A stretch of 63,373 bases of DNA, filler included, from Octopus bimaculoides (GCF_001194135.2; 4 parts of 3 records of this genome joined end to end with filler, not necessarily neighbours in it); one strand, 5' to 3'; positions 3,111-50,971 are shown, counted from the first letter of the whole stretch. The notes: generated from the letters alone by a model not told the origin. Translations and numbers: made by a program.

Positions 3111-4299
3111 AAGTTCATTTAATTACATAAAGAGTATAACAAATACTGCTGTACCAGAAGCAAGCTCCTGAAAATACAAATTTCAGTATATTATATTCCC
3201 TATTGTTCTTCATCTAAACCAGTAATGTGAATGATAAAAGCATAAACATCTTGATTATTATTTCCATGTGTCTAAAGTAAAGCCTTATGGCTGTGTAGTT
3301 ATGAAGGTTGCTTTGCAATACACGGTTTCTAATTTCACTGTAGGGCACTATAACCTCAGAACGACTAATTCTTTGTGCATGAATTTAGTAGGCACAAACT
3401 GTGTACAAGCTAGTCACGTAAGTACATACATACATACATACATACATACATACAAACATACATATATATATGACACGCTTGTGTAAAGCTATATATAATA
3501 GCGTGTAGAATAACGGCTTAAAAAAGGGGAAAAGATGGATGGAGTAAAGTGAAAAGCTGCGTTTGAGACTCGAACATACGCCTGTATCATTCAAAGAAAG
3601 TTCACACAGTATCAAATATAAATAATCACGCACGCGCACTCACTAAAACTATGAAAATTCTATCCTATCCTATGTTGCCTGAAGACCTTTGACTTCTAAC
3701 TTAACAGTGTAAAAATGTTAACGATATTTCAGATCCGTTTTCGCTACGAACAGCAGCAATGGAACGTGTTATTTTAAAAAATTAGTCAATCTACCATACA
3801 CGTGTACGCTGTTTTAAATAAACAATTATTTTGTTGTTGTAGTATCGGTTTTGAATTTGGGTAGCAGTAGTTATCATGAGAGGTGGTGGAATTCAGAAGC
3901 ATTTCATGTGAAGGGTGACATATATTTTGTGTTGCTATCCTATTTTGTTTTTGTTTTGTTTTAATTTTCAAATACATCTTTTCCTAGTAAGAATGAATAC
4001 ATCATAATAAACGTAAAATCAGCGTGAATCGTTGTTAGACGGAAATTTATATACGCCAATGTATTTGTTATGTTTACAGGATGGATTGTTTGTTTATTAG
4101 TGTTAAACCCAAATTTAGTATCCCTAACCTATGGGCATAGTAAGTTCGTTCATCAACGGACTGTTGTTACAATGATATGAACACCCTCTCTACTACCAAG
4201 GCAGGGATTTGCTGTAGATTTGTATTATTTTTTTCATCATTTTTTTTTTTAGGGAGGGGTGACCAATTAAAAGGACCTTCCTTGTTATTCTTTCGCATT

Positions 4300-6500: not shown

Positions 6501-6779
6501 TTCTAGACGAGCTCATCTTCATCGGAGCCCTCTTCGCTGCTTTCAGTGTAATCGGAAATGTGCCTCTAGAATCGGCCTTTTCAGCCATGAAAGGGCCTGC
6601 CAACGCCTTCAAGACAACCCCTAAGGATCAAAGACGACGTCGTCATCTGTCAAGATGGACTGCCTTAATCAAGTAAGCATATTACCCAGAACAAGTCAGT
6701 GGTCCTCGACTTAACTCTTAGTGAAACAAGTGCATGCTCTTGTTACATGATAGAGGGTCTAGTTAACGTGCTAGAGTTC

Positions 6780-7260
6780 ACCCGATAAAGAAATAAAGGC
6801 TGAGAAAAGGGTGGTTAGAATTTCTCAGATATGAGCGAAAGAAGCTTGCTTCATGGATCAAGCGAAATGACTAAAGACCAAATAGCTTCGCTGTATTACC
6901 ACGTGTTTGTCGTGCTTTGTTCCAGTAAGCAAATAATCAAAGTGGAGCGTATGATCTTTCGCTTCTGGTGGAAAGAATGGATTCCACTTAACTTGTGACA
7001 ATACTCACAATAGAGTCGCCTCCGAATAGTGTGGATAATATTTCACATGCGTGCCCTGAGTCTGATACATCTGCAGAGCGTCCTGGACAATGATGATGGA
7101 GGAGATATGGCAGAGTTCGTTGAATCTAACTTGCTGCGATCGGCTCACTTTGTCTCGAACAATCAATACTCTCTTGCAGTTCTGTCAGTGCAGGGATTTC
7201 TTGAAATTAACCACAGTCCATGTAACGGAAGTCCTCCAGACTATATCAATCGAACCGGGC
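6780..7260 (-). mobile_element. Decayed APE-endonuclease fragment (L1/Tx1-like)
   Basis: Interrupted remnants LQES, GRSADVS and LDYLL resemble APE motifs LQET, GRSAGV and IDYI. Confidence 0.3.
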
Positions 7261-25606: not shown

Positions 25607-25962
25607 AACGTTCACGGTTCAAGGAAGGCAACTCTGTCATATCTAATAAAAAAAAATTCCTAATTATGTCCCTTGGCACGTATCGCGAGATGATTTAGCA
25701 CGTTTCTGTGTTTATTCTTGTGTGAAAAAGTCCGTGTATGCGTTGGACTATTCCTCCTCATACTTTAATTTATTTATTTGGAGCCAATGAACAAATCTGT
25801 ACAGATGTGTTTCTTTTGTTTGTACCTTCTGGTATTATGCACATACTAGAAAAGACAAATACTCTCTTTCCTCCGCCCTTTTTTCTATCTTTTTATCTTT
25901 TTTCTTGCTCTCTGTATACACGCACACACACATACCCACACCCACACATGCATATATGTATG

Positions 25963-27370
25963 TTTTCTCTTTTTATTCAAGTTCTTAAGGAAGTTCAGGC
26001 CGGTTGCTAACAAAGCAACAAGATCATTTGAGCTAAGCGAGTTCCTGCTGTGTGGAATTATATGTCTGAGTTGGTGTGTGCATCTATTCACTTAAAGATT
26101 TTCAAATTAGAATCTTTGGAATGTCTCACAAATCTTCATTGTGCCACTAATAGATTGGATTTGGAGAATCCGCGTCAGTTTCTTTTGCTCTTTGTTCGAA
26201 AAACCTACCGTTTCTAGCTTTTTTTTTTTTAGAATCTTATTGATACATGACCTAATGCACTTATGATGACAGGTACAAATGAAAATTTATAGTTAGGGTA
26301 CAAGAGCTGTAAATTTCGCATTAATTCGCCTCAAATGTTCTCTTTTTTCCTGGACCTTTGATAGAACATTCACAGATAGCATCTCGTAGACACTTAAGGA
26401 GCAGCTGCTGATAATGTGGGTGTTATCTTCCACACTAGTATTGCAGAGCCGACATTTTTTATTACCCCATAGGGGATTAGTAACTTTGTCCCTCTTGTTT
26501 AACAAGTATTTAATAGCTATCTTCTGTTCCTTTTAGGTCCATGAAAGGTTACTCTTCCTGTCAATGCTGTTGTCATCCTATAGTTTACAGGATATGAATC
26601 CATGCATTGCTTTTCGTTGTTATGATGCCTGCTTCTCCTCCAATTCTCTGGTTAGGTAGACCAGTCCAACCTCGTTTGGATCACATGAGAGTATTATCAG
26701 AGTAGCTGCACAGTTCTTCTCCAATACTGATGAATATACATGAAATGTACTCGTTCCTTTCCTTACTGTTCGGTAGGTGTTGTTTGAATGATACAATGTG
26801 GCATTCAAAGGCTGTTTGCACTGACCTTTATGCCTCTACCGCTATCATTTTGTTCCATATATCCTATCGGTGTCGCTGTTAATGTGAAAGTTGCCAGTGA
26901 TGGTTGATACCTTTCTGGTTTTGATGTCCAAGTTGCATGTCCATTCCAAGATCCCAAATTTTGCTACTAGTACTGGTACCGAAAAGCATTGTGAAATATG
27001 GTCTTGAGATAGTTCTGAGTTCCATATTTTCCGGAGTCTACAAAAGTATCTCTTTTGTTATTCTGGCTTTAGTCGCAACACCAATGTACATAACATTCTC
27101 ATCGATTCCGAGATATTTTTAGTTTTCATCATTAATGATAGACAAGTCATTGATGTACATATCCTCAGCGTGACTCGTTCTAATTGTCTCTTGATGGTGA
27201 TCAAGTTACCAGGATATAACTTTAGGTCATTAACAAATAATGTGACATAATTTTAATTACTTTTTGCATGTCCCAGCATGTAGGCTTGGCATTTTGTCAA
27301 CAGAGTTGACGAGGGATTCACAGCGAATACAAACAACATTAAGATAAATTATCACCCTGGAATATACCTG
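25963..27370 (-). mobile_element. RLE non-LTR retrotransposon (CATA-associated family): RT domain 4 to 3' end, internally deleted
   Basis: Minus: GIFQGDNLS..., HYLFVNDLKLY, CRLCNTSVEDNTHIISSC (CCHC), then a jump to LMRNLQLLYPNYKFSFVPVIISALG. The 3' UTR is followed by catacatatatgcatg. Confidence 0.88.
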
Positions 27371-27751
27371 CCCTGCAGATATAGATATCTCTTTGAAAGT
27401 CAAAGAAAAAGAGGATATCTAAGGACAACTGCTTCGAAACCTCCAGCTTCTACACCCAGACTATGAATTCATATTCATACCAATAATAATTGGAGCACTA
27501 GGTTTTGTTAGTAAATGCTTAAAGGAAAATCTGGATAAACTGGGATTTTCAGATAGAGAAATCGACCAGCTAATTCGTACATTACAAGTGCAATCTGTGA
27601 GTGGAACAGTAAAAATATGCAAGACTTTTCTCAAGTTGCAAATGTAAATTTATCAATATTAACTGCATCCCAAAGATGGAGCCTTGTATCTTTGTTGGAA
27701 ACCGGCTCCCTCCTCAGAGGAAGATTTATGATAATTAAATAATAGAAGAGA
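27371..27751 (+). mobile_element. 3' end of a second CATA-associated RLE element
   Basis: CPADIDISLKVKEKEDI*GQLLRNLQLLHPDYEFIFIPIIIGALGFVSKCL...VSGTVKICKTFLK, then a 3' UTR and the tail catgcatacataatacatacata (27752-27774). Confidence 0.88.
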
Positions 27752-27774
27752 CATGCATACATAATACATACATA

Positions 27775-28155
27775 ATAGGCCCAGAGCATGCTTGACTGTT
27801 ATGTGCAAAAAAAAAAAATACAGGTTTTCTGAATATGTTTCTCCAAGATCACTGACAAATAAATAGTGTAATAACTGATGAACAAGCTGGAGGAGAGAAG
27901 GAAGTATGGAGCTGTGCTGTCCTTAAGAAACTCAAACAATATCGCTGTAATCTCTTAACAATGTGGCTACATTACAAGAATGCGTTCGAAGCTGTGCCTC
28001 ACTCATGGATGATAGAATCAGTACACCTTGCCAACGTACCAGTTGCTATAGAGAATGCCATTGAAAGATTGACCTCACATCATGGTCCACACAGTTATCC
28101 CTGACAACTACAATGTTACAAACATAATCAAGCTATCAACAGGTATATTCCAGGG
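27775..28155 (+). mobile_element. RT domains 1-4 of the element at 25963-27370, in inverted orientation
   Basis: RPRACLTVM...DEQAGGEKEVW...LTMWLHYKNAFEAVPHSWMIES...TGIFQG. Ends with the same 16 nt with which the minus-strand segment begins. Confidence 0.85.
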
Positions 28156-28399: not shown

Positions 28400-29110
28400 T
28401 ACCCTTCAATAGATGGGGTATATCTTCAATTTTCAATAGGGATTTATATTTATTTCTAGCTTATATTTTTTGATAAATGAGGTCTCTTTATTTAGTTGTA
28501 CTTATGTTGAAGTCCAAATAGCAAATTGATATAATGGGAAGATTAGGAATTGTGGTTGCAATTTTTCTGCACATCTGTCAATGTGTTCACTGAGATATAT
28601 CTGGTGATATTGTGGGGAAGATTTCTGTTGTCTACAGACTGTACATCTCCGTCGATTCTATATTGTTTTTATGGTAGCCCGAGCATTTGATTACATAAAT
28701 AAGGTTTCCAGAGGCGCAAGTGAAGTTGGGTTTAATTTTGAATTTTTTCCCTTGTCTAAAATGGAATTCTGATCCTTCCAATAGATTGGGACATGTTCCA
28801 CAGTTAGGACAACCACTTTTTCTTACTTTTGCGCCCGTTATTCTTGAGAATAATTTAGCATTTGTGAGGTTCTTCTTTAATGCCTTTGGTCGTTTACTGC
28901 TTTTAATGATTTTATGCGTACGTAAAATTTCCTTCAGTTTGGGGTTCTTATGGAGTATGGGAAGATTTTCGACAACGATGTTAAATGCTTCCTTGTTTCT
29001 AGGGTTGTATATGTACACATAAGATAATGTTTTCAGAATAGGTGTATCATTGTGATCGACTTTCTTAATGCCTTTATTAGACATGGTACAATGTAGTTCG
29101 ACATATAGAA
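28400..29110 (-). mobile_element. Penelope-like element, linker plus GIY-YIG endonuclease, decayed
   Basis: ORF 28632-29135 contains CPNCGTCP...KKFKIKPNFTCASGNLIYVIKC, typical of the PLE Cys linker and GIY-YIG start. It continues in broken frames to ETSFIKKYK. Confidence 0.88.
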
Positions 29111-30115
29111 AGGGGTGATGGCTACCTCCGAACATAGGTCCGCTCGATCAGAACTGACCTAGGGCTGAACAGCAAAAATAAATATTTCTAGCTTCGACTG
29201 AATGCTACAATTTCACCTTAGGGGCGTTGTTCATTATAAAGTCGAATCAGTTCAAAATTTGTTGGTATTTTATCTGGTATGGAAATACAAAATGCCAAGT
29301 CAATTTGGTTACGTAAATGGATGTAATTAAGTACTACAAAGATTATATTGTAGACATGATCATTTTGCGACTATTGATCCTATTGAAGACACTGATCTCA
29401 ATGCAGCTACTGATCATATTGCAATCATATCGTAAACATAGAATCTGACTGCAGCATAGTCACTGATCGTAGCGCTGACATTAGTAATAACGTTGCTATT
29501 TATAATTAAACAAGCAAACAAATAACAGAGACTGACGAGTATGATTAGAGCTATCATACTGTGGTCACTTTTCAAACAATAAAAATATTCCTTGTTCATG
29601 TTGCAAACAATTAACAAAAAAGAGGTGAACTCATTAATTAAAGCCATATAAATTCATTGTCATAACAACGTATTTAATGAATAATTCTTAAGTCGTTATT
29701 TATTTATTTTGTCTCACGCAAAGAGAAATATATAGTTTCATCTGAGTTATTATCTGTGGGTAGTATATATCTCGATAAATATTGGCTGGTTGTAAGAAAG
29801 AGGATTTGGTATTTACTCACTCTAAGATTAACTTTAGTATCCGAGGATATCAATCTTCACTTTAGTTTTAACACTCTCTATTATTCCAGTCTTTACAATA
29901 ATCATTCCCAAAACATAAGATCAGTAACTTGCTCATGCTGGCGTATATTTGCCTTCTTCCATCTTTTTCATAGATGGTACTCAATAGAAGAAGAAAAGTT
30001 TTGAAAATACATGTAAAAAATAAGCACAATCAAGCACTAAAATAATTCTGACAAAACCACTTGCCTACTTTGCATCTTCTGGATTTTCAATTAGTATACT
30101 ATGAAGGAAAATATT

Positions 30116-30331
30116 CTTTTTCTACTCTAGGCACAAGGCCCAAAATTTTGGGGGAGGGGGCCAGTCGATTAAGTCGACCCCAGTACTCAACTGGTACTTG
30201 ATTTATCGACTCCGAAAGGATGAAAGGCAAAGTCGACCTCGGCGGAATTTGAACTCAGAACATAAAGACAGACAAAATGCCCCTAAGCATTTCACCCGGC
30301 GTGCTAACATTTCTGCCAGCTCGCCGCCTTG
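30116..30331 (-). mobile_element. SINE family 2 copy with perfect 18-bp TSD
   Basis: actatgaaggaaaatatt at 30098-30115 and 30332-30349. Confidence 0.93.
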
Positions 30332-31885: not shown

Positions 31886-33768
31886 CCGGGAAACGAATTC
31901 ACAACCTTACAATCGTGAGCGAATACCCTAACCTCTAGCACAAGTGTCTCCTCTCTTTTTTTTCTCTTTCTCTCTTTATATATATATATATTTGAAATTT
32001 ACAGAAAGACAAAAGACGAAGACAGGTGTATGACCAACAAACAGGTGCATTAGTTTGACGCTCGGGAAAATGAGAAAGTCTTTTACGTTTCAACAGAAAG
32101 GAATAAGAGAAAATAAACAGAGAGAAAATAAACGAACTTATGGATTTAGAGATCAAGCATGGCGACTGGTTGGGAAAAAAGGTTTGACAGGAGAGGCAGA
32201 AAAAAGGGGAGATAATAAAGTAAAGGTGATCCCAAAACAAAGGTGAACGTGTGTGTATGAGTATGTGAGGATGTGTAAGTGTGTACGTGGATGGTGGCTA
32301 GTGATTGTGAAGTATGTGGATGAGTGTGTGGATTGTGAAGTGTGTGGATGAGTGTAAGTGTGTACGTGTGTAGGTGTGTGCGTGTGTAAGTGCGTGCGTG
32401 TAATATGTAGGTGTGGATGATGGTGTGTGGTGTGGTGTGGTTGGGAAGTGGTCAGTGCTAGTGTGTGTGGAGTGGGGTGGGGTGGAATTATATGGTGGTG
32501 TGGTGGTGTGTGACATGATAGGGACGATGATGGGTGCCTGTGAGGATGGTGGTGTTGGAGAGGTAGGGACAAGTGCGGCAGCGTGGGCGGCGGGAGCAGG
32601 GAATCAACAGATGTGACCCAGAGATTCTCGGTATAGAAAACACTTAGCGCCCAAAGGATTGGAACATAGACTCCGATGTCTTTATGAGGGATCACTTCCG
32701 CAGGGAATTGGTGACTCCAAGAGGAGCAAATATTGAGGAAATTATGCGGATAAGCAAATGAAATATAACAGCTTGGGTTTGATACGCTATATATNNNNNN
32801 NNNNNNNNNNNNNNNNNNNNNNNNNNNNNNNNNNNNNNNNNNNNNNNNNNNNNNNNNNNNNNNNNNNNNNNNNNNNNNNNNNNNNNNNNNNNNNNNNNNN
32901 NNNNNNNNNNNNNNNNNNNNNNNNNNNNNNNNNNNNNNNNNNNNNNNNNNNNNNNNNNNNNNNNNNNATATATATATATATATATATACAAAATCGAGCA
33001 CACGTACGCAAGGTGTGTGTGTTGTTAGTTTGTGCGTCGGCTGCGTTTTAGGCGTACGGTGTTAAAAAAACCTGAAAGTAAGTCATAGGCAGCGAGACAA
33101 CTCACATCAGATCCCTGGTCGGAGCGACCAACATCAATATTTCGTCATTGTTGTAACTTTTCAATGCCGCATACCGAACAAAACCCGCTGCAAACTATAC
33201 CGCCGACTATACTAAGTGGTCTAAAAACCATCTGGCATGTCCCAGCGTTTCATGTCACGGAAAGAATCAAATATGAACTGGAAGCAGCTCGAGATATATA
33301 AACAAAATTGAACACACATATACAAGGTGTGCGTGTTGTTAGTTCGTGGGTCGGCTGTGTTTTAGGTGCAATAAGGCGAAAAGATTTTCAGGCGATCAAT
33401 ATTTAAGTATAAATATATAGATATTTATACATTAATAGATCAAACTTACACAGAGTACAAACGACAAAGAAAATTAAAGGGGAAGTAGTAAGGTCCAACA
33501 GCTGCTTCTGGAGTCTCGGAGGTCCATCGTAGTATTGGTAAGAATATAGATATATTACATTTACACAGACGTAAATACACATAAGCATATATGCACATAT
33601 GTAGCTGTGTACTTTGTATATATGCTTGGGAGTACAGGTAATAAAATATTTTCTAAATTAGATTTCTTTGTAGAGCTTTCTCTCTTCCTCCATCTCTTCC
33701 ATTTTGTATCTTACTCTGAACCTTATTGTAGCACAGGAATAATAAAAGAAAGCAATTTTCTTTTACAG

Positions 33769-33938: not shown

Positions 33939-35689
33939 GCTACATACGAAGTGGTAATTCATTTGTCGTTACAACGAATATCAGCCCCTCGTGGAAATTA
34001 AATGGATCTGACTTTGTAACTAGTTCCTCATATTATTCTACCTCTGATATCCTTGAGAAAGAATCACATACGCTTCATATTTCCCATCTTAGCTCTCTTT
34101 TGAAGTTAAAAGAAGTTAATTATGCATTAATTAATATTGCTGAGTATAAATAGTCAAAAAATAAGAGCAGATATTTATTGATCATCTTGCAGATTAGTCC
34201 TACTCATTTTGTCGTTTTGTCGGGGTAAGTAGGTCATGCCTAAGACCCATTATTACGTTTTGATATACGTCATGCCAAAAGTGGTCCCGACATTATAACT
34301 TGCGGAAAACATTTGATTCTTTTCCGTCCTGAAAAGTACAATAAAACACAGTTAGTATCAATATTTTTCGCGTGATTCGTCAGGTCCTAATTTGTCGGAC
34401 AAATTTAAGGATTAGAGTTTAGAAAAAAAAGAAGAAAGCAGTTGAAGTAGGCTATCCTCTGACAGTTAAGTCGTTACTAATCTCGTGTATAGATCTGCAT
34501 ACATATATGAATGTATGTATGCGTATATGTATACATGTGTGTAAATAGCGAAGGAATAAATATAGATATTTGTTGTTGTTATTCTTGCTGTTGGTTTATC
34601 CGAGATCCTCCTTTTTACCACTTATCCGGGCTGTGTCTGTGACTATTGCGTCTGTGTTCGCGTAACGCAAAGTCTCAGTAACCTCAACATTAAAATCTGA
34701 GTAAAATATTGAATTTCGGTACTGAAAAGCGCAATTCAACACAAATGCAATCGTTTACTATTCGCGAGTTGAGAAGTTATTATAAATACTAGCGATAAAT
34801 AAGGAAATTTCTTATAGGTGCTCAGTGAAGGTTATGCTTATTTAGAGGCCATTTAATTTAATCGGTAGCGCATTTACTAAGCAAGCGATTGATGCGTGGT
34901 GCTTCTCCCATAAGCGCATGGTACATAAAACTACAGACATAAATCGCACTGCGACATCAAGTAACTAAAAAAGACACTGAAACTCTTCATGTTGTGGCAG
35001 CGAGATTTGGTTGGTATGCGGTCACCGGACGACTGCAACTGAGGAAGTCTAGAAGGCTGAAATCACCTGATCTGACAGTTCCGATGCCGATAACAGACGA
35101 CTCTAGTCAGCTACGATTTACGCCTATGCATTTATACACTATGCACCAATATAACATGGTCAATAACTCAGTAATCGACATTCTAAAAAGACATTCACTT
35201 CAAATTGGATATAAAGATTACATTTTAGTTCTAATACTGTTTCCATCTCTAATAATTATTATTTGAAAATGCTTTTTTACTATTAGGCACAAGGCCCTTA
35301 ATTTGGGGAGGAGGTAATACCAATTATATCAACCCTGGTACTCTATTTTGTTTACTTGGATAGCTGAAAGGCAAATTTTGAGTCGGCGACCTTTGAACTC
35401 AGAACTTAGAAGAAATTTAAATAATTACCGTAAATCATTTTGTAAATCATAGTTTAACAACCCACCAATCAATCGACCCTTTTGACTATTTAATAATGGT
35501 CTCAAACTTGTGAAACTATCTTTAAGTAGGAAAATAACAATCGACTAAATCTCTCCTGTTAAATTTGCTCTCCTTGACAAAAAGGACAGCAGTTGTAGTG
35601 GGGAGGTTAGTCAATATGAACCCACTAATTTTTAATAGTACTGTATTTTATAGACCATAAAAGGATGGAAAGTACACAATTCAACAGGT

Positions 35690-39639: not shown

Positions 39640-41295
39640 GTGCTTGACTTTTGCTTTGTATTTGTACAAGTTACTCCAAGTCTCACCCAGAGACCTCAGG
39701 AGACAAACAAGTTAGAAGTTCATGTTGGTGTTATGCCTAGGGTGTCATATATTTGGTTTTGCGCATAGTATTGTTCTAGAGAATGTTTAAGAAAACATAA
39801 GAAAATTATGAGTTTGTATTAAAATTTGAGATTAGATAGACAGTATTTTATGTAGGATATTGGTAGTTCCCATGAGCACTATCTTGTGAATTTCTGCAAT
39901 TTTGGGGTTTCCAGGTAACTGAGGTAGGTAGGAATCAGCCTTTTTTGCTTTCATTCCTATGGTGCGTATGACAACAGGTATTGTTTTAGTCTTGAGGTTC
40001 CACATTTTGCCAATTTCTATTTCAAGATCTTTATACTTGTTCAGTTGTTGGTAGGTTTTGACAGGCAAATTTATGTTGATTAGGACAGTCATATCAATGA
40101 AGAGGCATGATTTTTGTCTGAAATCCTTCAATATAATGTTTGGTCTATTTGCATCTATCTTTCAGTCAGTTTTAATGGTGAAGCCTCAGATGAGCAAGAA
40201 GTAATCATTTTCAAGCAATGGAGATAACTTCTGTTCCCATTAGTCTTTATCATGGGACAGATCCAGGTTTTTGCAAATTTCCCAGTGAATATATTGTCCT
40301 GCTCTATCATGCAGCATCATTAGCTGAAATTATATAGTGCAAGGTGAATTTTACCAATTACTTTTAGGTTTTGGTCAGAATTGCAAACTTCTGAGAGAGT
40401 GTCACGTTCATTCATACTGGCTTCTTTAATTTTCAGCCATTCAATCATGATTTGATTTTTTAGATAGTGTAGTTCAGTTGGGTCAATTTCTGTGTAATTT
40501 TATTCATCTATTTGATTTTCATCTGCCTTAGTGTTTATGGTTGATTGAGAGTGTATTTCACTTTGCTTATCTGTTACATTAACTCTTTCAATCAGTATTG
40601 CATTTTCCTCAGACCTGGATTGGTCTATAATTATTTCCTCAACAGTATCTTCTTTAGCTGTAACTTCGTTCCTTTTATCCTTTACTAATTGTTTAATTTG
40701 GTCAGTCTGTAATTCAATTAGTAATCTCTTTTTCATAATGTTTCTTCTGACGTTGGCAAGTTTGTTACTGTCTATGTAGGGTCTTATTTCAAGGTGTTTC
40801 TGTTTTCAGTTTAAGTAGGTTTGTACAGTATTAGATTTATTTGTGGGGAAATACATAGCATGATAGAAGGCCTTAAGAACTTCTTTATTATCGCCTCTAG
40901 ACCATTTTCATTCTTTTTCTTTTGGTTATTTGACGACGAGAAAGGATTGCCATCTGTTGGAATATTCCATTTGTGGGGTACTTCCAGCTCTTGTACTATG
41001 GGAAGATTTGAACCAGTAACTGATTTTTCGTACCCGATCTGGTTCATCACTCGGGTACGTGGCCTTTGTTTAAGCGGGTGACGGCGGATCCGGTTTGTAT
41101 TTGGTATTGTAATCATTGAAGCATGACGAGCTTGGACGTCGACATTAGGGGACGGATTTGTCTGTTTAGGGTTAATTTTTGAGACAACACCACCTCCGAG
41201 TTCTCTGAATGAAAACATTGCTCGTAACGTAGATCCTTAAGACTAACAGATCTGTATTCTTCTGTATTTTTTGTTGTTACATTTATCTCCGAGTA

Positions 41296-42070: not shown

Positions 42071-42621
42071 ACTGATGACAACGACAATGCATAAATTTAA
42101 TTATAATTACTATAATTACTATAGTTGTAATTTTTTCCTTACATATTTGTATTGTCCTTTGAAACGCGCGTATGTATTGAATCTTATTTTGTATTACATC
42201 TAATTTTGATTCAGCATCTTTTTCTCCTCCATTTTTCTATAATTGTTTATGGTATTTTTATACCTATAACGATAATTTTCAACTACTATTTTCATATTCT
42301 TATTACTTGCTCTGGCTGTGCATCATGAATATGATGGATCTTTATTAAAAATCATTCTTTCTCTCTTTTTGGACCTCTCAAAAAGTTTGAATTGTTCTCT
42401 TTCGAACTTATGTTTTCCTATATNNNNNNNNNNNNNNNNNNNNNNNNNNNNNNNNNNNNNNNNNNNNNNNNNNNNNNNNNNNNNNNNNNNNNNNNNNNNN
42501 NNNNNNNNNNNNNNNNNNNNNNNNNNNNNNNNNNNNNNNNNNNNNNNNNNNNNNNNNNNNNNNNNNNNNNNNNNNNNNNNNNNNNNNNNNNNNNNNNNNN
42601 NNNNNNNNNNNNNNNNNNNNN

Positions 42622-43912
42622 AGTGAACACCTTGCTGTCTAAATTACGCAAAAACGAAAATAACATTGACATCTCATTTTAACAGATATATTTACCAAAG
42701 TTACATAAAAATATTTTGAAATACAATAGAGTAAATTTATTCAATAAAATCGCCATTTCTTTCGACCAGAGACGACTTTGGTATCTCCTGCAACTCTTCT
42801 GGACGGTCTCCTTGTTTAAGTTGGTGAATGCTGCCATAATCCTTGTCTTCAGTTCATCTTTGATGTTACAAAGAGTTTTGTGAGTCTCTCGCTCAAATGC
42901 GCCCCACACATAATTATCAAGGGGTTTGAAGTCTGGGGAGTTAGGTGGCCAGATGTTAGAGATGATGTGGTCCGAGAAATTGTCTGACAGCCATGACTGG
43001 GTTCTCCTGCTTGTGTGGCATGGTGCAGAGTCCTGTTGCCAGATATAAGGTCTTTCAGCAGCCACCCAATTCACCCAGGGTAACACTATCTCCTCCAGGC
43101 ACTTGATGTAGGCCTTCGTGTTGAGTCTGAGGCCGTGTGGGAAGATGAATGGAGGCATAACGTCACCAACACTAGTGATAACTCCAAACACCATGATGTT
43201 GACTTGATGCTTGACTTTTATCACTCTCGGTACGTCTTGGGGACACGGCAAGCCAACGGTTGTTATGTATGTTCACTATTTGATCCTGGCATAAATTTTT
43301 CACATCTGAGAAAAACCAAAGCATGTTCGGATGAAGGGAATACTTGAGTTTGTTCAAAGGCTTCGCTCCACGGTCTTTCCTCTTGTACTTGATGGTTTCG
43401 GATAAATATTGACGCTTTCTCATCTTATATGAGGAATACCGAATGTATTGATGCACTCCCTGCCTGATAAGAAACTCAGATAGTCCCATGTCACTGGCGA
43501 TAGACCTGATTGACTGACGATGGACCTGACTGAGGAATCGTTGTCAATTATAGCTTGGATTTCACTAACAAATTCAGGAGCTCTTTTCTTATCAGAACCA
43601 TCAGAGTGAGTTTTCCGAGCTGGCGTACCTTCATATTCACCCTTAGACTCAGCCAACTCTTCCCGAATCTGTCCTCAGTTCGACACCCAAACACTCTACA
43701 ATGTTCGTATTGGAGCTTCCAGCGCGAATGCCAAGCTGTACAGTTTGTCGTTTCCAAATTTCTATCAGAGTTAATTACGTCATGGGGGTGTTTTTTCTTT
43801 CTCAGACCGTGCCCAACTAATCCTACTATACTGTGTAGTCGACAAAATGAAAATCAATGTGCATGTGCGAAATTAAAAATATGGCGACAATTTACCCATC
43901 GCAACCTGCATA
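42622..43912 (-). mobile_element. maT (DD37D) Tc1/mariner transposon, near full length, decayed
   Basis: WFFSDVKNLCQDQ..N..NRWLA; WQQD-SAPCH...WPPNSPDFKPL-D with 37 residues between D2 and D3. Terminal repeat caggttgcgatgggtaaattgtcgcc at the right end; the left end enters a gap. Confidence 0.92.
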
Positions 43913-45112
43913 NNNNNNNNNNNNNNNNNNNNNNNNNNNNNNNNNNNNNNNNNNNNNNNNNNNNNNNNNNNNNNNNNNNNNNNNNNNNNNNNNNNNNNNN
44001 NNNNNNNNNNNNTATATATATAATTATAAAACTTATTGACTTTCTATGTGAAATACCAATGTACGACATTATAAAACAATTAGAGAGGTATTTCTAAAAC
44101 TTCAAACTTAATTAAATGGAAATAATTGAATGAGTATGTATATTTATGTCTTTAAGGGTTGGGTAAGACATGTATATTTGGATTTGTGTGCATGTGTGTG
44201 TGTGTCTATGCGGGTTTGTGTACATATGCAGTTAGCCAATCACTCTTAATTGAAAAAGTATTGAGCATATAGTTTTTTTTCTTTTACATGACTTGTTGTT
44301 TAGCCTCAGGTAAATCTTTATTCAACATACTTATAATCAAAGGTTCTCCATTTGTGAGACTCCTGTATTTTATTGTAATGTAGGTCTACACTATCTAACG
44401 TATATTTTTTTAAAGATACCAGAGAGTGATTTGATGGGCTTTGTCTTTCATTTATAGTCAGGTGATGATATCAGGGCATCTTTTTGACAATTTTTGCATA
44501 TAACACTGTTCTCTGGCACATGCCCAGTTCTGATTTAAAAGACCAATAATTGAAGATGTTTCAAACTTAAACATCATACCTTTTAGGCTTACATTATCTA
44601 ATAAATCCATTTCTATTTCTTTAGATAGTAGGCTATGATTCGGGGAAAAGTTGATTTCTATTTCTAGCTACTTCTAACAGGTTGAGCAACCATGAAGATG
44701 TACTTTCATTGGCTTTTGTTGCACATAACAGTTGTAGGCAGGACATACATTTGCAGAAGAATCCAGAAAATTCTCAGTATTTGAGAGTGCACTAATATTA
44801 TCGCAATTGTCATTCAAAATGTAAAACACGATGAATATAACTATTGCAACTTATATGAGTTCGGCAGATTGGAGGTGTGTAGAATACTAAACTTGAAGCC
44901 CTCTGCTCATCTCATTCTTTTCTGCTAGAAACCACTACTCAGTTTCCTCTGTTATTCTCCATGCAGTATCTTATACAAATACACGTACACACATTTTTAC
45001 TTTCTGTATAATCTATCCTACTTCACTTTCCAAGTGTGCTGAGAAAAGAAAAGTCAAGCACTTGTCTATTTATTTTCTTCTGTTTTAGCCCACATCTTAC
45101 CTTCTTATAAAT

Positions 45113-45185
45113 GCATATGTATGTATGTATGTCTGTATGTATGTATGTATGTATGCATGTATGTATGTATGTGTGTATGTATGTA

Positions 45186-45216
<31 letters not shown>

Positions 45217-45240
45217 ATGTATGTATGTATGTATGTATGT
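45113..45240. repeat. (TATG)n tail/target array
   Basis: Directly visible. Follows the 3' end of the minus-strand element. Confidence 0.95.
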
Positions 45241-45784
45241 CATTATTCAGTTTATTTCAAGATTTCTTGTCAATAGAGAAAGAGCCGGTTTCTAACCTAG
45301 ATTCAAGACCCCCTTCATTGGAATTTCAGCATTAACAACAGGGTATTTTTGTATGTATGTATGTATGTATGTATGTACGTATGTAGCTATATATGTATGT
45401 ATGTATGTGTATGTGTGTATATATGTATGTATGTACGCATGTATGTATGTATGTATGTATGTATGTATGTACGCATGTATGTATGTATCTATATGCAGAT
45501 TTGTATGTTTTATGTATGTATTCTCATGCATAGGTTCCTCCTATATTCTCGCCCCTCTGACATCACAGTTTTGTTGATTAACAATTGCTCGGCACATCAC
45601 CAGACTCCCTTCTTCCCAACATCTTGTTCTGCTGTGATAGTGTTATTGGTTTCATAATGGTCTTGGAGGATGAGGTTTAAACATGATGTATAAATTTCAT
45701 ACGTTAAGTTTCGGCATGCAATTGGCCGGTAGTTTTTGTCATGTGGGTGGTTCTGCATTCAGGAATCAATTTTGTCTCTGCTAT
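45240..45784 (-). mobile_element. Internally deleted CATA-associated RLE element (RT domain 1-2 piece fused to 3' UTR with internal (CATA)n)
   Basis: ETKLIPE...YRPIACRNLTYEIYTSCLN...EQLLINKTVMSE, then 3' UTR part X (45489-45532), (CATA)n (45351-45488) and 3' UTR part Y (45240-45350). Confidence 0.85.
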
Positions 45785-45822
45785 ATGTATGTATGTATTT
45801 ATGTATGTATGTATGTATGTAT

Positions 45823-47941
45823 GCACAGAGTTGTATGTTTTATGTATATATTCTAATGCATATAGTTGCATATCTAGATATGCTCATATATATTTAAATG
45901 ATAAACTTCTGGAAAGTTTTACAGACTTTTACAGTTCCAGTGATGGATTTGAAGTGTAGTCTTCGAATTAGCTTTCCCCTCTCTGGTTTTGAGAAGCCTA
46001 TTTCTCAAGATTGGTATTTAGACAGTGTGTTACACATCCCAGGGTCCCAGTAATTACAGGTATAAACCCCTGAACTTGTAATCTGGACACAGTAACTGCA
46101 GATTTCTCAATAGTTCAACATAAGTGTTGTCTTTTTCACTGATCTTCAGCTTTATGTTAACATCCGCTGGGCAGCTAATTTCCACAACTGTATACAGTTT
46201 CTCTTCTCTATCCCAAATCATTATATCAGGTCTGTAGTGCTTACATTTTATTGAGGTCTTCACTAGTACAGTCCACCAGTATTCCTTTTTATTATTATGA
46301 GTGGCTATGACTTCTACCATATTGTGGGTTCTTATTTCTTTGTCCTCGGGATTATCCTTCCGACGGATTTCATTATAGAGTGTGTCATCGGTAGATAATA
46401 CCATGATGACATTTTCGGACAACTGCTTATGATGTGGGTGATATCTTCAGTGTGAACTCCACGAAGTTTGTATCGGTTGTCACATTTTACGACTTTTCCT
46501 GCATCTCTATCCCTTTTGTGAATCAGGTACTTGATATTTCCTGTTCCTGGACTGCACACGTATACCCTTCAACGTGAGAGGTAATAATCCGGTTGTTTGT
46601 CCATGATAAACTGTTTCGATGATCGATGTTACTATCATAAGGAGCTTTCTGCTAACATATCCATGCATAATTTTCTGCTCATATAGGCGCATCCTTTCAT
46701 CTGATGATGCGCTGTGGTAGAGTAGTGCGACTTCTTTGGGTATGTATTCTAGGTTATCAGACAAAGAGTGTTGCTCAAGGAGCTGCCTTCCAAGTCTTAT
46801 GATGTTGTCGACCTCATGTATGCAAACTAGGTCAAGGGATGCACTTCAACATTTGGTGGTTAAAAGATGTTGCCGAAGGGATAAGATGCGACATTCAAAG
46901 GCAGTTTGGATTGATGTTAAGCCTCTGCTGCCTTGTTTATGTTTTAGGTAGAAGCAGTCTATGTCACTGTTTATGTGGAAATTATCTGTGCTTGTTAATA
47001 TTTTGCAGGTGTTCTCATCAATGGCTTGCATCTCATCAAGCATTCAATCAAGCAGCCCAAATGTTCGTATGAGTACTGGTACTGCAAACACATTGTGGGC
47101 CACTGTTTTATTGAATACAGAGAGTCCTGAGGTCCAAATTTTCTTTATTCGGTTGTAATATTCTTTAGTGACACGTGTTTTGTTACAGGTGCCATTGTAA
47201 GATATGTTTTCATCCACTCCTGGATACCTGTAACATTTCTCGTCAGATAGAGGGGAAACAATCAAATCATTAATGGAGATGTTACTAGTCTGGTTTATAG
47301 ATTTCCCCCTTTTCACAACCATATAACATTTATCCTGACCAAGCTCCAACCCTACATCCTTTGAGAATGTTGTAACTAGGTCAAGGCTCTTTTCCATCTC
47401 ATGCATAAAGTCATCCACAAAGAAACAATGTATAATTTTGGTATTTCTATTTCCTCGTGAACCAGTGAGATATCCTTCAGACCTCCTTAACATGAATGAT
47501 AACGAGTTTACAGAAAGTATAAGCAACATCACAGAGAGGCTGTCTCCTTGGAATATGCTTTGTGATATTGTATTCCATCGGTGATAATACAGTCACTCTT
47601 TGTGTTTAATTTCAAGATGGTGGCCCACGATGAAGTCAGGTTAGCTATGGCTTAGACTATTCTCACTGAAACTTTAGCAAGCTGAAGGGCTTCTAGCATC
47701 CATAAGTGGGGAACAGAGTCTTTCTTGTAGTGTAGCCACATCGAAACTAGGTTCTTCCTATGCTCTCGCACCTCTGACATCACAGTTTTGTTGATTAACA
47801 ATCGCTTGGCACATCCCCAGACTCCCTTCTTCCCAGCTGCTTGTTTTGCTGTGATAATGTTATTAGTTTCACAAAGGTCCTGGAGAAAGATGTTTAAACA
47901 TGCTGTATAAATCTTATACATTAAGTTCTGACATGTAATTG
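45823..47941 (-). mobile_element. 5'-truncated RLE non-LTR retrotransposon (R4/Dong-clade-like): RT-CCHC-RLE, bounded by (CATA)n
   Basis: [11 protein letters not shown]...KQAAGKKG; FQGDSLSVML; HCFFVDD; EDITHIISSCP; HYRPDIMIWDREEKLYTVVEISCPADVNIKLKISEK. (CATA)n lies at both junctions. Confidence 0.93.
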
Positions 47942-48077
47942 TATGTATGTATGTATGTATGTATGTATGCATGTATGTATGTATGTATGTATGTATGTAT
48001 GTATGTGTGTGTGTATGTATGTGTGTATGTATGTGTGTATGTATGTATGTATGTATGTATGTGTGTGTGTATGTATG

Positions 48078-48180
48078 TCATTATTCAGTTTATTTCAGAA
48101 TTTCTAGTCAATAGAGAAAGAACCGCTTTCTAACCTACATCCAAGGCTCCTTCATTGGAATTTCAGCATTAACAACAGGT
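48078..48180 (-). mobile_element. Isolated 3' UTR part Y of the CATA family, between (CATA)n arrays
   Basis: tcattattcagtttatttcagaatttctagtcaatagagaaag...ttcattggaatttcagcattaacaacagg is homologous to 45240-45350. Confidence 0.88.
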
Positions 48181-50971
48181 TATGTATGTATGTATGTATG
48201 CATGTATGTATGTATGCCTGTATGTATGTATGTATGTATGTATGTATGCATGTATGTATGTATGAATGTATGTATGTATGTATGTATGTTTGCGTATGAG
48301 TGCCTATGTAGTATGTATGTAAAAATGTGAATTCATCTAGGTGAATTCTATTCTTAATTATTAGCGCTAAGAATATTTGTTACTTTCATAATCTACAGCA
48401 TTAATTTGATGCCCCTGTAATTGCTTCTTCGAGCATCTTCTTTGCTTTTGTAGTGAAAGATGGTTATACTGTAATGGAAATAACTAGGTATGATCCTTCC
48501 CCTGTATAACTTGGTTGGCTACGCGAGTGACTATCTTGAGCCCTACACCACCACCACCACCACCACCACCACCACCACCACCATCATCATCGTCATCATC
48601 ATCAGCAGCAGCAGCAACATCATCATCGATGATATAGCAGAAATGAAATTCCAAGCATTTGTAGAAAGCTCACTATCAGCCAAAGAATAAACCAGATGCC
48701 TCAAGCGATTTATCTAATTCATCACCTTCAACGACAGTGGGGAAATGAAATCGGTTATAGTGATGGGTGGAAATTACATGGAGCGAAAAGAAAAATGGGA
48801 TCCCCCCAAAAAGTCCTATTAATGATAAAATCTGCAAAAATATCCTACCTAGAAAATTCCTATAATTCGTAGTTCCTTAACGTAACATTTTCCTGTAAAG
48901 ACAAACGTGAAATTGATAGAGCATATAAGAGAAGAAATTTTAAAAAAAATTGTCCTAATGAGGTGATAATAGAGGTCGTCCACAAAACGTTGATGGATAA
49001 ACTTTGATAGGATAACAGCTGCAAACTAATGATTTTAACTCTTCCTAGGAGTTGTAGGGTGTTAATTGCTGAGCTAAGGCCCCAGTACCAAACGGCATCT
49101 GCAATAAGGCCCCAATACCAAAAGCATCTGCAATAATAGCACGACTAAAGATTGGTTGTTTGAATGTTTATTACCTGGTGATGGCTGAAAGTAGTGTCAC
49201 TGTTTATACATGGTATCTATCAGCGTGACTGGAACTTCTGGCACACAGTTCACTTGCACCTCTCCTGACTCACATCCTGGAGTATGCTTCAATTGCCCGA
49301 TTCGTCAGAGGCAAATCCTCACAAATATTTTATTGAAGTTTAGTGTTGGGTATCAGCGATGACGTTCATGGGAAGACCATAAGCACCAGAAAACACCAGT
49401 TAATTAGTCTATTACTGAAGATTTTTGACTCTCAGAAGCCCCTGCAACTACATTATAACTTGCCTTAATTGTAGCATTTCCCTCGTGTATCGCTGAATGG
49501 AATAATTGTCTACTTTTACTTTCTGTCTTTTAATTTCAACAATGCAATCGTTCGAGACACCCCCTATTTTAACACATTTATTGTCCTTGTCAGTAACAGT
49601 GCTGGTGCACATTGTATTTCTTCATTGTTGAAAGCACAGATATCTCAGAGCAAGCAATACCACTAAGAAGTTTTACCGATTCGAAGAAACTCTACAAATA
49701 TGCGAGTAGTGTCTGTCGTCCATTTTCGAGTTGCGGAGAGAGTGATGTAACAATTCTTCACGCACACGTTTGGTGTCGGAGAATTGCTGATATATGGAGC
49801 TTTTCAACAATTACTATCATATGTAGAACAGACATATTTGCCGGCTGTATACTTTGTAAAGATCACTGAATTACATTCCTTTAGTGAGAGGTGGACACTT
49901 TCCCTGTCTGTAGGCTATGGCGGAACATAATCTTGAGTACAAGCTTATTTCTCTCCGCCCCAAAACTTATCGATTTCTTTAAGTCTACTTTAAGCGGAGA
50001 AGGTGGGGAAGGTACTTTTTCCAATGAAATTTAATGAAACGTAAATAAAATGGTGAAACTGGTTCGTGTGAGAAGGCAAGGTCTTAAGTTATGCCTGGAA
50101 ATTGAAATAAAGAGACGGAATATTCAGATCTCGAAGGGTGAATTCCTTTTACGTTGCCTAAAAATAATATTTTTCCTATGTTTTGCACATTTAACCTCAG
50201 TCCAGCTTACAGCATAGGTACACTTAAATGTTTCAAACCATTTTGTATAAAATATTGAGTGCGTCTGTGTAATGCATTGCAGGGCAATAAAGACCAACAG
50301 TTATTATTATCATTGTTGTTGTTAATATTTCATTATATTTAGCATAAAAACAAGTTTCCATATTAGTTTTGATTGTTCACATTGTATTCATATGCCTCCC
50401 TCGTTAAACAGTGATTACACATAAGCACAAGTACTTCACAGCAACATATGAAGTATATATAACAACACCCACACGAACATAAACACAAACAGGCAAAAAC
50501 TTATTGACTACTATGATATGCGATATTTTGTTTTGAGTAGAACGTAGTCTTTAAGAAAACAAGCAACCATTTAGTAGTAAGTAGAAGCTGTAACAAAAGT
50601 AGTAAGTAACCTATAGCAAAGAGCCTTCACTAGTCTTAGTATGGAGCCTTTTTGTTTGGTAGCTGGCGAATGATTGCTAAAATGATTATTACTATTTTAG
50701 TATTCTCTTCATTTCTTTAAAATTCTTATAACAACAGCCTTATTTTCAGAAACTAAAAAATTTACATAATTTCGCTCTGCGATAGGATCACCGATACTTA
50801 TTTTAAACAGTACAACAATGAGCTGCAGAAGCAATTGTAAATGCTTTGATGCAATCAAACCTCCAATCATAAGAAATTCTTCATTGCGATGCAAATTGTC
50901 TCCTATGATAAACAAGCTGTATTTATTAGTCGGCATCCCATCCTCGCTTTATCTCTCGCATTCTCTTTGTG

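Follow-up and report, generated by a model that had tools for sequence, protein, structure and literature searches.

Dong-like retrotransposon copies flanked by tetranucleotide microsatellites in the genome of Octopus bimaculoides

We analysed a stretch of 63,373 nucleotides (nt), filler included, from the genome of Octopus bimaculoides (GCF_001194135.2), in which four parts of three records are joined end to end; this whole stretch is referred to here as the window. In a 25.6-kb piece of it, positions 45116-48289 contain an array of retrotransposon copies of the type without long terminal repeats (non-LTR), which alternate with tracts of a tetranucleotide microsatellite. The array is read on the minus strand throughout, and its tracts are labelled (ACAT)n, which is equivalent to (CATA)n. 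An original prediction, made from the sequence alone, had assigned these copies to a family encoding a restriction-like endonuclease (RLE) that appeared to target this microsatellite and to nest into itself. Here we describe the copies, their junctions with the repeat, the protein that they encode and their relation to known elements of the Dong/R4 kind.

Element copies in and near the (ACAT)n array

The order along the minus strand is (ACAT)n-Y-(ACAT)n-copy A-(ACAT)n-copy B-(ACAT)n-Y'-(ACAT)n, which bears out the single-orientation order that had been claimed for 45116-48289. Five (ACAT)n arrays of 40-146 nt each are thus separated by four element pieces, all of which share one orientation (Table 1).

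Copy A corresponds to residues 458-1149 of an intact relative of 1,151 amino acids (aa), P0004 (tblastn E 1e-139). Its three-frame translation contains at least four frameshifts and several stops, and the reverse transcriptase (RT), a remnant of a CCHC motif and the PD..E..K core of an RLE can still be read in it. The open reading frame (ORF) ends about 70 nt upstream of the repeat tail. Copy B shares 86% identity with copy A over 192 nt (blastn), starts about 60 nt farther 5' and has lost the stretch between RT motif 2 and the final ~40 nt of the 3' untranslated region (3'UTR).

The two short pieces, Y and Y', had been labelled 3'UTR pieces, but they do not represent the 3'UTR of the 2.1-kb copy. 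They are homologous to each other and, over their full length, to the 3'UTR of copy D (27645-27750), a member of a sister family located in a second cluster, while their alignment to the 3'UTR of copy A revealed no homology. Y ends in AATAATG, after which the repeat begins. Y (48180) and Y' (45349) begin no more than 7 nt apart relative to copy D, at the site of its stop codon, and the pair could represent a short non-autonomous derivative, similar to a short interspersed nuclear element (SINE), instead of two chance truncations.

The self-nesting that had been claimed was not borne out either, as no copy lies inside the body of another. The array is more aptly seen as serial insertion into one repeat tract or into the tails of earlier copies, in the same orientation each time.

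That the array merely appears as such, due to collapsed or mis-joined repeats in a gapped scaffold, is extremely unlikely. Gaps of N do occur in the piece (32795-32967, 42424-42621 and 43913-44012), but none of them lies within 45116-48289, the copies differ from one another by 12-14%, and the same architecture is found in unrelated assemblies made by other methods.

A second cluster (25916-28155) sits 18 kb from the array, and the presence of related copies there, already noted in the original prediction for 25963-28155, was confirmed by tblastn. The CATA-like tails ascribed to these copies were found in degenerate form at copy C and in short form at copy D; the 3' part of copy E, which begins immediately after the copy D tail, is missing. 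Copy C on the minus strand and copy D on the plus strand face each other head to head: their 5' ends, at 27342 and 27357, are separated by ~14 nt that contain no repeat. This pair forms the exception in the window. Inversion by twin priming was considered for it and ruled out, since the 3'UTR and tail of one copy differ from those of the other. Within a single lineage, the window contains at least three families (A/B, D/Y/Y' and C).

The 5' ends of copies A (47939), B (45783) and E (27778), which come from two families, cluster within ~21 codons of one another, at the RT motif NYRPIAC.N.MYKIYT. The DNA of this motif (ATGTATAA..TATACA) resembles the target repeat, and the clustering, seen in three cases only, suggests that the 5' ends were joined to (ACAT)n by microhomology.

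Table 1 Element copies, repeat tracts and motifs in the window, and loci of relatives used for the comparison of junctions (TRF, Tandem Repeats Finder)
Feature	Positions	Strand	Repeat	Basis and description
(ACAT)n array 1	48181-48289	-	(ACAT)n	TRF period 4, 27 copies; upstream remainder of the target tract, unique sequence beyond
Y	48079-48180	-		3'UTR-only copy, ~100 nt, from the sister family of the D type; aligns with Y' and with the copy D 3'UTR
Hairpin of Y	48116-48154	-		Covariance-model match, E 2e-6
(ACAT)n array 2	47940-48078	-	(ACAT)n	TRF 34.8 copies; downstream flank or tail of Y and 5' flank of copy A
Copy A	45824-47939	-		2116 nt; 5'-truncated, decayed RT-CCHC-RLE element
Copy A RT active site, FFVDD	47410-47424	-		Three-frame translation
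Copy A CCHC remnant	46419-46484	-		Three-frame translation; second Cys mutated
Copy A RLE core, PD..E..K	46132-46230	-		Three-frame translation
(ACAT)n array 3	45784-45823	-	(ACAT)n	TRF 10 copies; copy A tail and copy B 5' flank
Copy B	45496-45783	-		Internally deleted relative of copy A; blastn, repeat family D7, tblastn residues 453-522
(ACAT)n array 4	45350-45495	-	(ACAT)n	Imperfect; TRF row 45350-45521
Y'	45241-45349	-		Second 3'UTR-only copy, D-type family
Hairpin of Y'	45278-45316	-		Covariance-model match, E 5e-7
(ACAT)n array 5	45116-45240	-	(ACAT)n	TRF 31 copies; downstream remainder of the tract, then unique sequence
Copy C	25963-27342	-		Residues 596-1149 and 3'UTR; tblastn; third family of the clade
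Hairpin of copy C	25993-26031	-		Covariance-model match, E 6e-8
Copy C tail	25962-25916	-		Degenerate CATA/CA; sequence
Copy D	27357-27777	+		Residues 1056-1151 (C-terminal 96) and 3'UTR; tblastn
Hairpin of copy D	27674-27712	+		Covariance-model match, E 8e-9
Copy D tail	27751-27777	+		Short, ACAT-like; sequence
Copy E	27778-28155	+		5'-truncated RT fragment, residues ~455-563, 3' part missing; tblastn
L001			(ACAT)n	41 ACAT units directly before a full-length 5'UTR; non-element DNA upstream
L002			(ACAT)n	3,993-nt contig; full-length element with the repeat at both contig ends
L005-L008			(ACAT)n	Same locus recovered in four samples; flanked by the repeat on either side and, farther out, by unique DNA
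L009/L010			(ACAT)n	5'-truncated units between (ACAT)6 arrays
L013			(ACAT)n	Repeat at the 3' end only
L015			(ACAT)n	5'-truncated copy adjoining 46 units
L011			(ACTT)n	Full-length copy between 26 and 29 units; 5'-truncated copy; start of a third element of another family
L012			(ACTT)n	Repeat on both sides
L014			(ACTT)n	237 units upstream, 44 downstream
L017			(ACTT)n	Repeat at both contig ends

The repeat at the 5' and 3' junctions

We tabulated the junctions of the window copies together with those of relatives 40-47% identical, which were fetched with their flanking DNA from unrelated public assemblies; copies within one array do not represent independent events. In the window, five of the seven 5' junctions lie on (ACAT)n. 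The claim that both the 5' truncation points and the 3' ends abut CATA repeats stood at these five 5' junctions; the 5' ends of copies C and D do not adjoin the repeat. The long (ACAT)n arrays of the 25.6-kb piece all belong to this cluster and make up ~2.3% of the piece, so that five of seven junctions falling on them is far beyond chance, even though the copies of the cluster are not independent.

Outside the window, 11 of 12 readable 5' junctions abut the same tetranucleotide as the 3' end on the same strand, seven of them on complete or nearly complete elements. Combining the window and the relatives, the family's own repeat is found in sense orientation and at zero distance at 16 of 19 readable 5' junctions and at every 3' junction (17/17). 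The motif varies by family, being either (ACAT)n or (ACTT)n, and is identical on both sides of an element. As a positive control, the same scan recovered (TAA)n at the 3' ends and 5' truncation points of relatives with 28-36% identity, including a moth element. A tabulation of junction flanks had been put forward with the original prediction as a check on targeting, and the one made here, on the window copies and on relatives from other assemblies, placed 16 of the 19 readable 5' junctions in the element's own repeat. The notion of a CATA-targeting lineage is thereby supported as far as (ACAT)n specificity is concerned, but CATA is not the only target, since in sister families (ACTT)n takes its place.

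Long interspersed nuclear elements (LINEs) that have no target often carry repeat tails. The tetranucleotide might be nothing but an element-encoded 3' tail, with random integration, and with the upstream repeats generated by template jumping of the RT or by unequal crossing-over or tandem duplication of a unit of element plus tail. A true tandem array of this type does exist at L009/L010, where identical 3,093-bp units are separated by (ACAT)6, and in the window and L014 there are upstream repeats that belong to other copies as their tails. The outermost 5' repeats (beyond 48289, and in L001, L011 and L012) are, however, preceded by DNA that matches neither an element 3' end nor the 3'UTR hairpin described below. 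Full-length copies with precise, family-conserved 5' ends adjoin long arrays, and several single full-length copies have already been seen that stand by themselves, bordered by the repeat at either end and then by unique DNA. Moreover, neighbouring copies belong to different families (A/B and Y in the window, P0008-type and P0011-type in L011) and hence are not duplications of one unit. We regard a tail without targeting as unlikely.

We give even less weight to a passive association, in which copies integrate at random and survive in repeat-rich DNA of low recombination, or in which microsatellites grow from the A/T-rich ends of the elements; this is very unlikely. Such passive accumulation is described in a review (PMC3812793), and an explanation of this sort has been put forward for Drosophila Waldo-A and Waldo-B, which lie near CA repeats. 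The piece analysed here is indeed rich in other microsatellites and transposon debris. Yet its (TAG)n, (AGA)n, (ATT)n, (AC)n and (TA)n microsatellites carry no copies, the junctions are exact (0-nt distance), strand-specific and motif-specific, and where sister families have changed to (ACTT)n, both sides have changed together. Judged from the genomic junctions, where the repeat is present at both ends in sense orientation in the window as well as in distant relatives, integration is shown to be repeat-specific and strand-specific.

Some of the loci displayed further details. L015 has a mixed 5' flank at 3373-3558, in which (ACAT)n is followed by 14 units of (ACTT) and again by (ACAT)n; it derives from the same sample as the tandem array L009/L010 and may reflect an encounter of the two target classes within a single tract. 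In L011, (AACT)n and ~60 units of (AACG)n lie between two (ACTT)n runs at 6709-7014. The 70-nt stretches upstream of two separate (ACTT)n arrays of L011, at 1316-1386 and 6640-6708, are copies of one repeat, and another element with an (ACTT)n end may therefore exist there. The L009/L010 contig measures 18,187 nt; each of its identical 3,093-bp units consists of a 5'-truncated element and (ACAT)6, and the 3'UTR contains ~25 copies of a minisatellite of ~16 nt (GTCTATATTGTCTGAG-like).

Encoded protein, phylogeny and 3'UTR hairpin

A search with the stitched translation of copy A returned 71 relatives, the best with 45% identity, whose full-length forms comprise 1,130-1,160 aa. Several families have hundreds of near-identical copies, and the clade includes intact proteins of ~1,150 aa. 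Pfam gave only a sub-threshold RVT_1 match for stitched copy A, and RVT_1 together with a weak zf-RVT for the relatives; no zinc finger family and no apurinic/apyrimidinic endonuclease (APE) domain was detected by Pfam in the protein. In an alignment of 36 sequences, residues C955, C958, H967, C972, P1041, D1042 and K1073 are nearly invariant, corresponding to the CCHC motif, the PD pair and the downstream Lys.

The best sequence matches of the protein in the PDB are R2 proteins. Using an AlphaFold model of P0004 (predicted local distance difference test score, pLDDT, 85; predicted template modelling score, pTM, 0.76), Foldseek returned R2 target-primed reverse transcription (TPRT) complexes as top matches over 900-1,100 columns (E 1e-28 to 9e-35, 15-18% identity), ahead of LINE-1 ORF2p. 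A three-helix domain is predicted at residues 21-83, in the conserved N-terminal stretch of ~75 residues, and hhalign shows its homology with the N-terminal part of (TAA)n-flanked relatives (probability 95.8%, E 8e-9). BLASTP of P0004 against the (TAA)n-flanked moth protein P0071 gave 3e-93, with collinear homology from the pre-RT region through the RLE. The layout is a single protein with an N-terminal three-helix domain of the Dong type (SANT/Myb-like), an RT, a CCHC knuckle and a PD-(D/E)XK RLE. The assignment to RLE elements was thereby upheld, with CCHC and PD..E..K readable in copy A and an R2-like fold that continues through the C-terminus.

R4/Dong-clade elements possess a divergent N-terminal SANT/Myb-like domain and lack a zinc finger (PMC7998251), and Dong itself is an RLE-type member of the clade with (TAA)n as its target (PMC7998251, PMC3812793). 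The elements described here have the same succession of RT, CCHC and C-terminal PD-(D/E)XK RLE in one ORF, a divergent N-terminal domain of this type without a zinc finger (Pfam, hhalign) and, like the members of the clade that use ribosomal DNA (rDNA) or a microsatellite, site-specific insertion (16/19 5' and all 3' junctions). In place of the (TAA)n of Dong proper, every clade member is flanked by (ACAT)n or (ACTT)n.

We then placed the elements in a distance-based, neighbour-joining tree of the RT domain (67 sequences, 359 columns, 100 bootstraps). Every ACAT- or ACTT-flanked element, copy A included, falls in one clade with a bootstrap of 100/100 and a long stem. The two basal branches of this clade are (ACAT)n families, and (ACTT)n families occur in at least two places within it, at inner nodes with a support below 60%. 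The other sampled relatives in the tree are of the (TAA)n type or have no readable flank. The tetranucleotide clade is nested among (TAA)n-flanked Dong-like elements, its nearest outgroups being (TAA)n-flanked, and in sequence searches it is far closer to these elements than to R2. Membership in R4/Dong is suggested by proxy, through the (TAA)n-flanked nearest outgroups in a tree without R4, Rex6, HERO and NeSL reference sequences. The relatedness to Dong/R4 that had been proposed agrees with these outgroups, with the collinear homology to the moth protein and with the shared N-terminal domain.

Most families carry a conserved motif 40-100 nt upstream of the 3' repeat, in which a hairpin with a 6-bp stem and a 5-nt loop is preceded by CCUUG and followed by CCGG. 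It is present in Y, Y', C and D, and also in eight copies from other assemblies, among which both target types are represented. In the alignment of these 12 sequences, 92.5% of cells are paired, compared to 71% in shuffles and 20-48% in slid controls, and compensatory changes on both sides were found at 8 of 10 pairs. As the structure was drawn from the same sequences, the pairing figure is inflated, whereas the compensatory changes are not. Outside its training set, a covariance model detected the motif in L005, in L017 and in one more L014 copy, exclusively on the sense strand; none of 26 Dong-like (TAA)n loci gave a match. Rfam gave no match for eight loci at the gathering level. For two 5'UTRs searched at E<=1 no ribozyme was found, and the microRNA and snoRNA matches fall on the repeat and are artefacts; an R2-like hepatitis delta virus (HDV) ribozyme at the 5' end is therefore unsupported.

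Insertion model, known systems and neighbouring features

Taken together, the copies very probably derive from site-specific non-LTR retrotransposons of the Dong/R4 kind, and the cluster represents the decayed remains of four or more insertions (Y, A, B and Y') that took place independently in a single (ACAT)n microsatellite. A number of observations weigh against this reading. The copies of the source genome come from two clusters only and are thus not independent, and the 5' junctions of C, D and L013 lack the repeat. At the 3' side, an element-encoded tail and the downstream half of a target are indistinguishable. Some upstream repeats are tails of earlier copies, as at L014, where a hairpin lies at 2713-2751; this implies that pre-existing microsatellites and earlier tails both serve as targets. 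The conserved hairpin is absent from the family of copy A, which has a different small hairpin. Finally, no match of the N-terminal domain on its own reached significance in Foldseek (best E 2.7, with a weak likeness to the DNA-binding domains of Sap1 and Timeless), and we only infer that this domain may act as a DNA-binding module.

By analogy with R2, site-specific insertion could proceed as follows. The protein would bind its own RNA through the 3'UTR hairpin, and the N-terminal domain would recognise (ACAT)n duplex DNA, possibly with added recognition through pairing of the terminal ACAU repeats of the RNA with the nicked (ATGT)n strand. The RLE would nick this (ATGT)n strand, and the resulting 3'-OH would prime reverse transcription. 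The 5' end would then be joined inside the upstream repeat, often after premature termination, giving rise to 5'-truncated copies that still adjoin the repeat. Every insertion would recreate the target on both sides, so that later insertions stack head to tail in one orientation.

We propose more tentatively, with somewhat less than even confidence, that these families constitute an ancient, widespread, still active and undescribed Dong-like clade, in which the target changed from (TAA)n to (ACAT)n and switched more than once between (ACAT)n and (ACTT)n, while the N-terminal domain was kept and a 3'UTR hairpin of its own was gained.

The kind of element is well known, and the target and the clade may be new. 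A full-text search of the literature, not extending to Repbase and Dfam, turned up no RLE element for which (ACAT)n or (ACTT)n is given as the target. Dong of Bombyx mori and the Dong-like elements of insects, molluscs, cnidarians and ostracods have the same single-ORF SANT/Myb-like-RT-CCHC-RLE layout and strict, strand-specific insertion into a microsatellite. Unlike them, the present elements use a tetranucleotide target, fall into a long-stemmed clade of their own that is supported at 100%, and possess a 3'UTR hairpin that went undetected in the 26 (TAA)n-type loci. R4 (Ascaris and other nematodes) and Rex6 (teleosts), compared by description only, have the same domain order and belong to the same clade by published classification; R4, unlike the elements described here, inserts into 28S rDNA.

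Among the microsatellite-targeting elements, Waldo (WaldoAg1, WaldoAg2 and WaldoFs1), of the R1 clade and APE type, targets (ACAY)n (PMC3812793). As this includes ACAT, Waldo uses nearly the same microsatellite, and the resemblance is convergent: its APE endonuclease lies N-terminal to the RT, while the present elements have a C-terminal RLE and no APE. Further microsatellite targeters of the APE type are Mino with (AC)n, Kibi with (TC)n and Koshi with (TTC)n (PMC3812793, PMC4640811). Togen, a NeSL-related element with a (TG)n target, and the microsatellite-specific HERO families of leeches, of the HERO clade and with their motif not stated, are likewise of the RLE type (PMC4640811); by description, these elements are set apart by their different or unstated motifs and by their publication under other clades. 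R2 (TPRT complexes of Bombyx mori, zebra finch and turtle) provides the best structural match over almost the whole protein and a mechanistic model for nicking and TPRT. It differs from the present elements in having one or more N-terminal CCHH zinc fingers along with Myb and a 28S rDNA site in place of microsatellite flanks, at an identity of 15-18%.

Site-specific RLE retrotransposons, namely R2 and its relatives, are under development as gene-insertion tools, for which target choice is an open question. The clade offers intact proteins with minimally different targets, ACAT and ACTT, both of which differ from the (TAA)n of their nearest relatives. If the proposal is true, it would provide a natural series of related site-specific integrases with targets one base apart per unit, suited to mapping the control exerted by protein domains versus RNA-tail pairing in R2-type machines. 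For genome biology, the insertion into these repeats explains the strings of same-orientation LINE fragments by which certain animal genomes have their (ACAT)n and (ACTT)n tracts interrupted, as well as the assembly breaks there, and amounts to a second, independent origin of ACAY-type microsatellite targeting besides the APE-type Waldo.

Several other features were observed in the window. On the minus strand, positions 39835-40179 contain part of a distantly related RLE domain, which shares 22-25% identity with the relatives over their residues 1021-1142 and probably comes from another RLE-bearing retroelement. Just past the breakpoint of copy E, a 167-aa ORF (28632-29135, minus strand) has a Cys-rich stretch followed by ..NLIYVIKC.., which may resemble the GIY-YIG endonuclease region of Penelope-like elements; Pfam gave no match for this ORF. 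A 190-aa ORF at 42682-43251 (minus strand) shows a weak DDE_3 match (E 0.004) and looks like the C-terminal part of a Tc1/mariner transposase. About 260 nt past the array, (CAC)n and (CAT)n trinucleotide arrays adjoin each other at 48546-48627 and are unrelated to the elements. Lastly, two copies of a short dispersed repeat, 74-77% identical (..GGCACAAGGCCC.. / ..TTTGAACTCAGAAC..), were found at 30110-30264 and 35266-35408, and this repeat is possibly a SINE.

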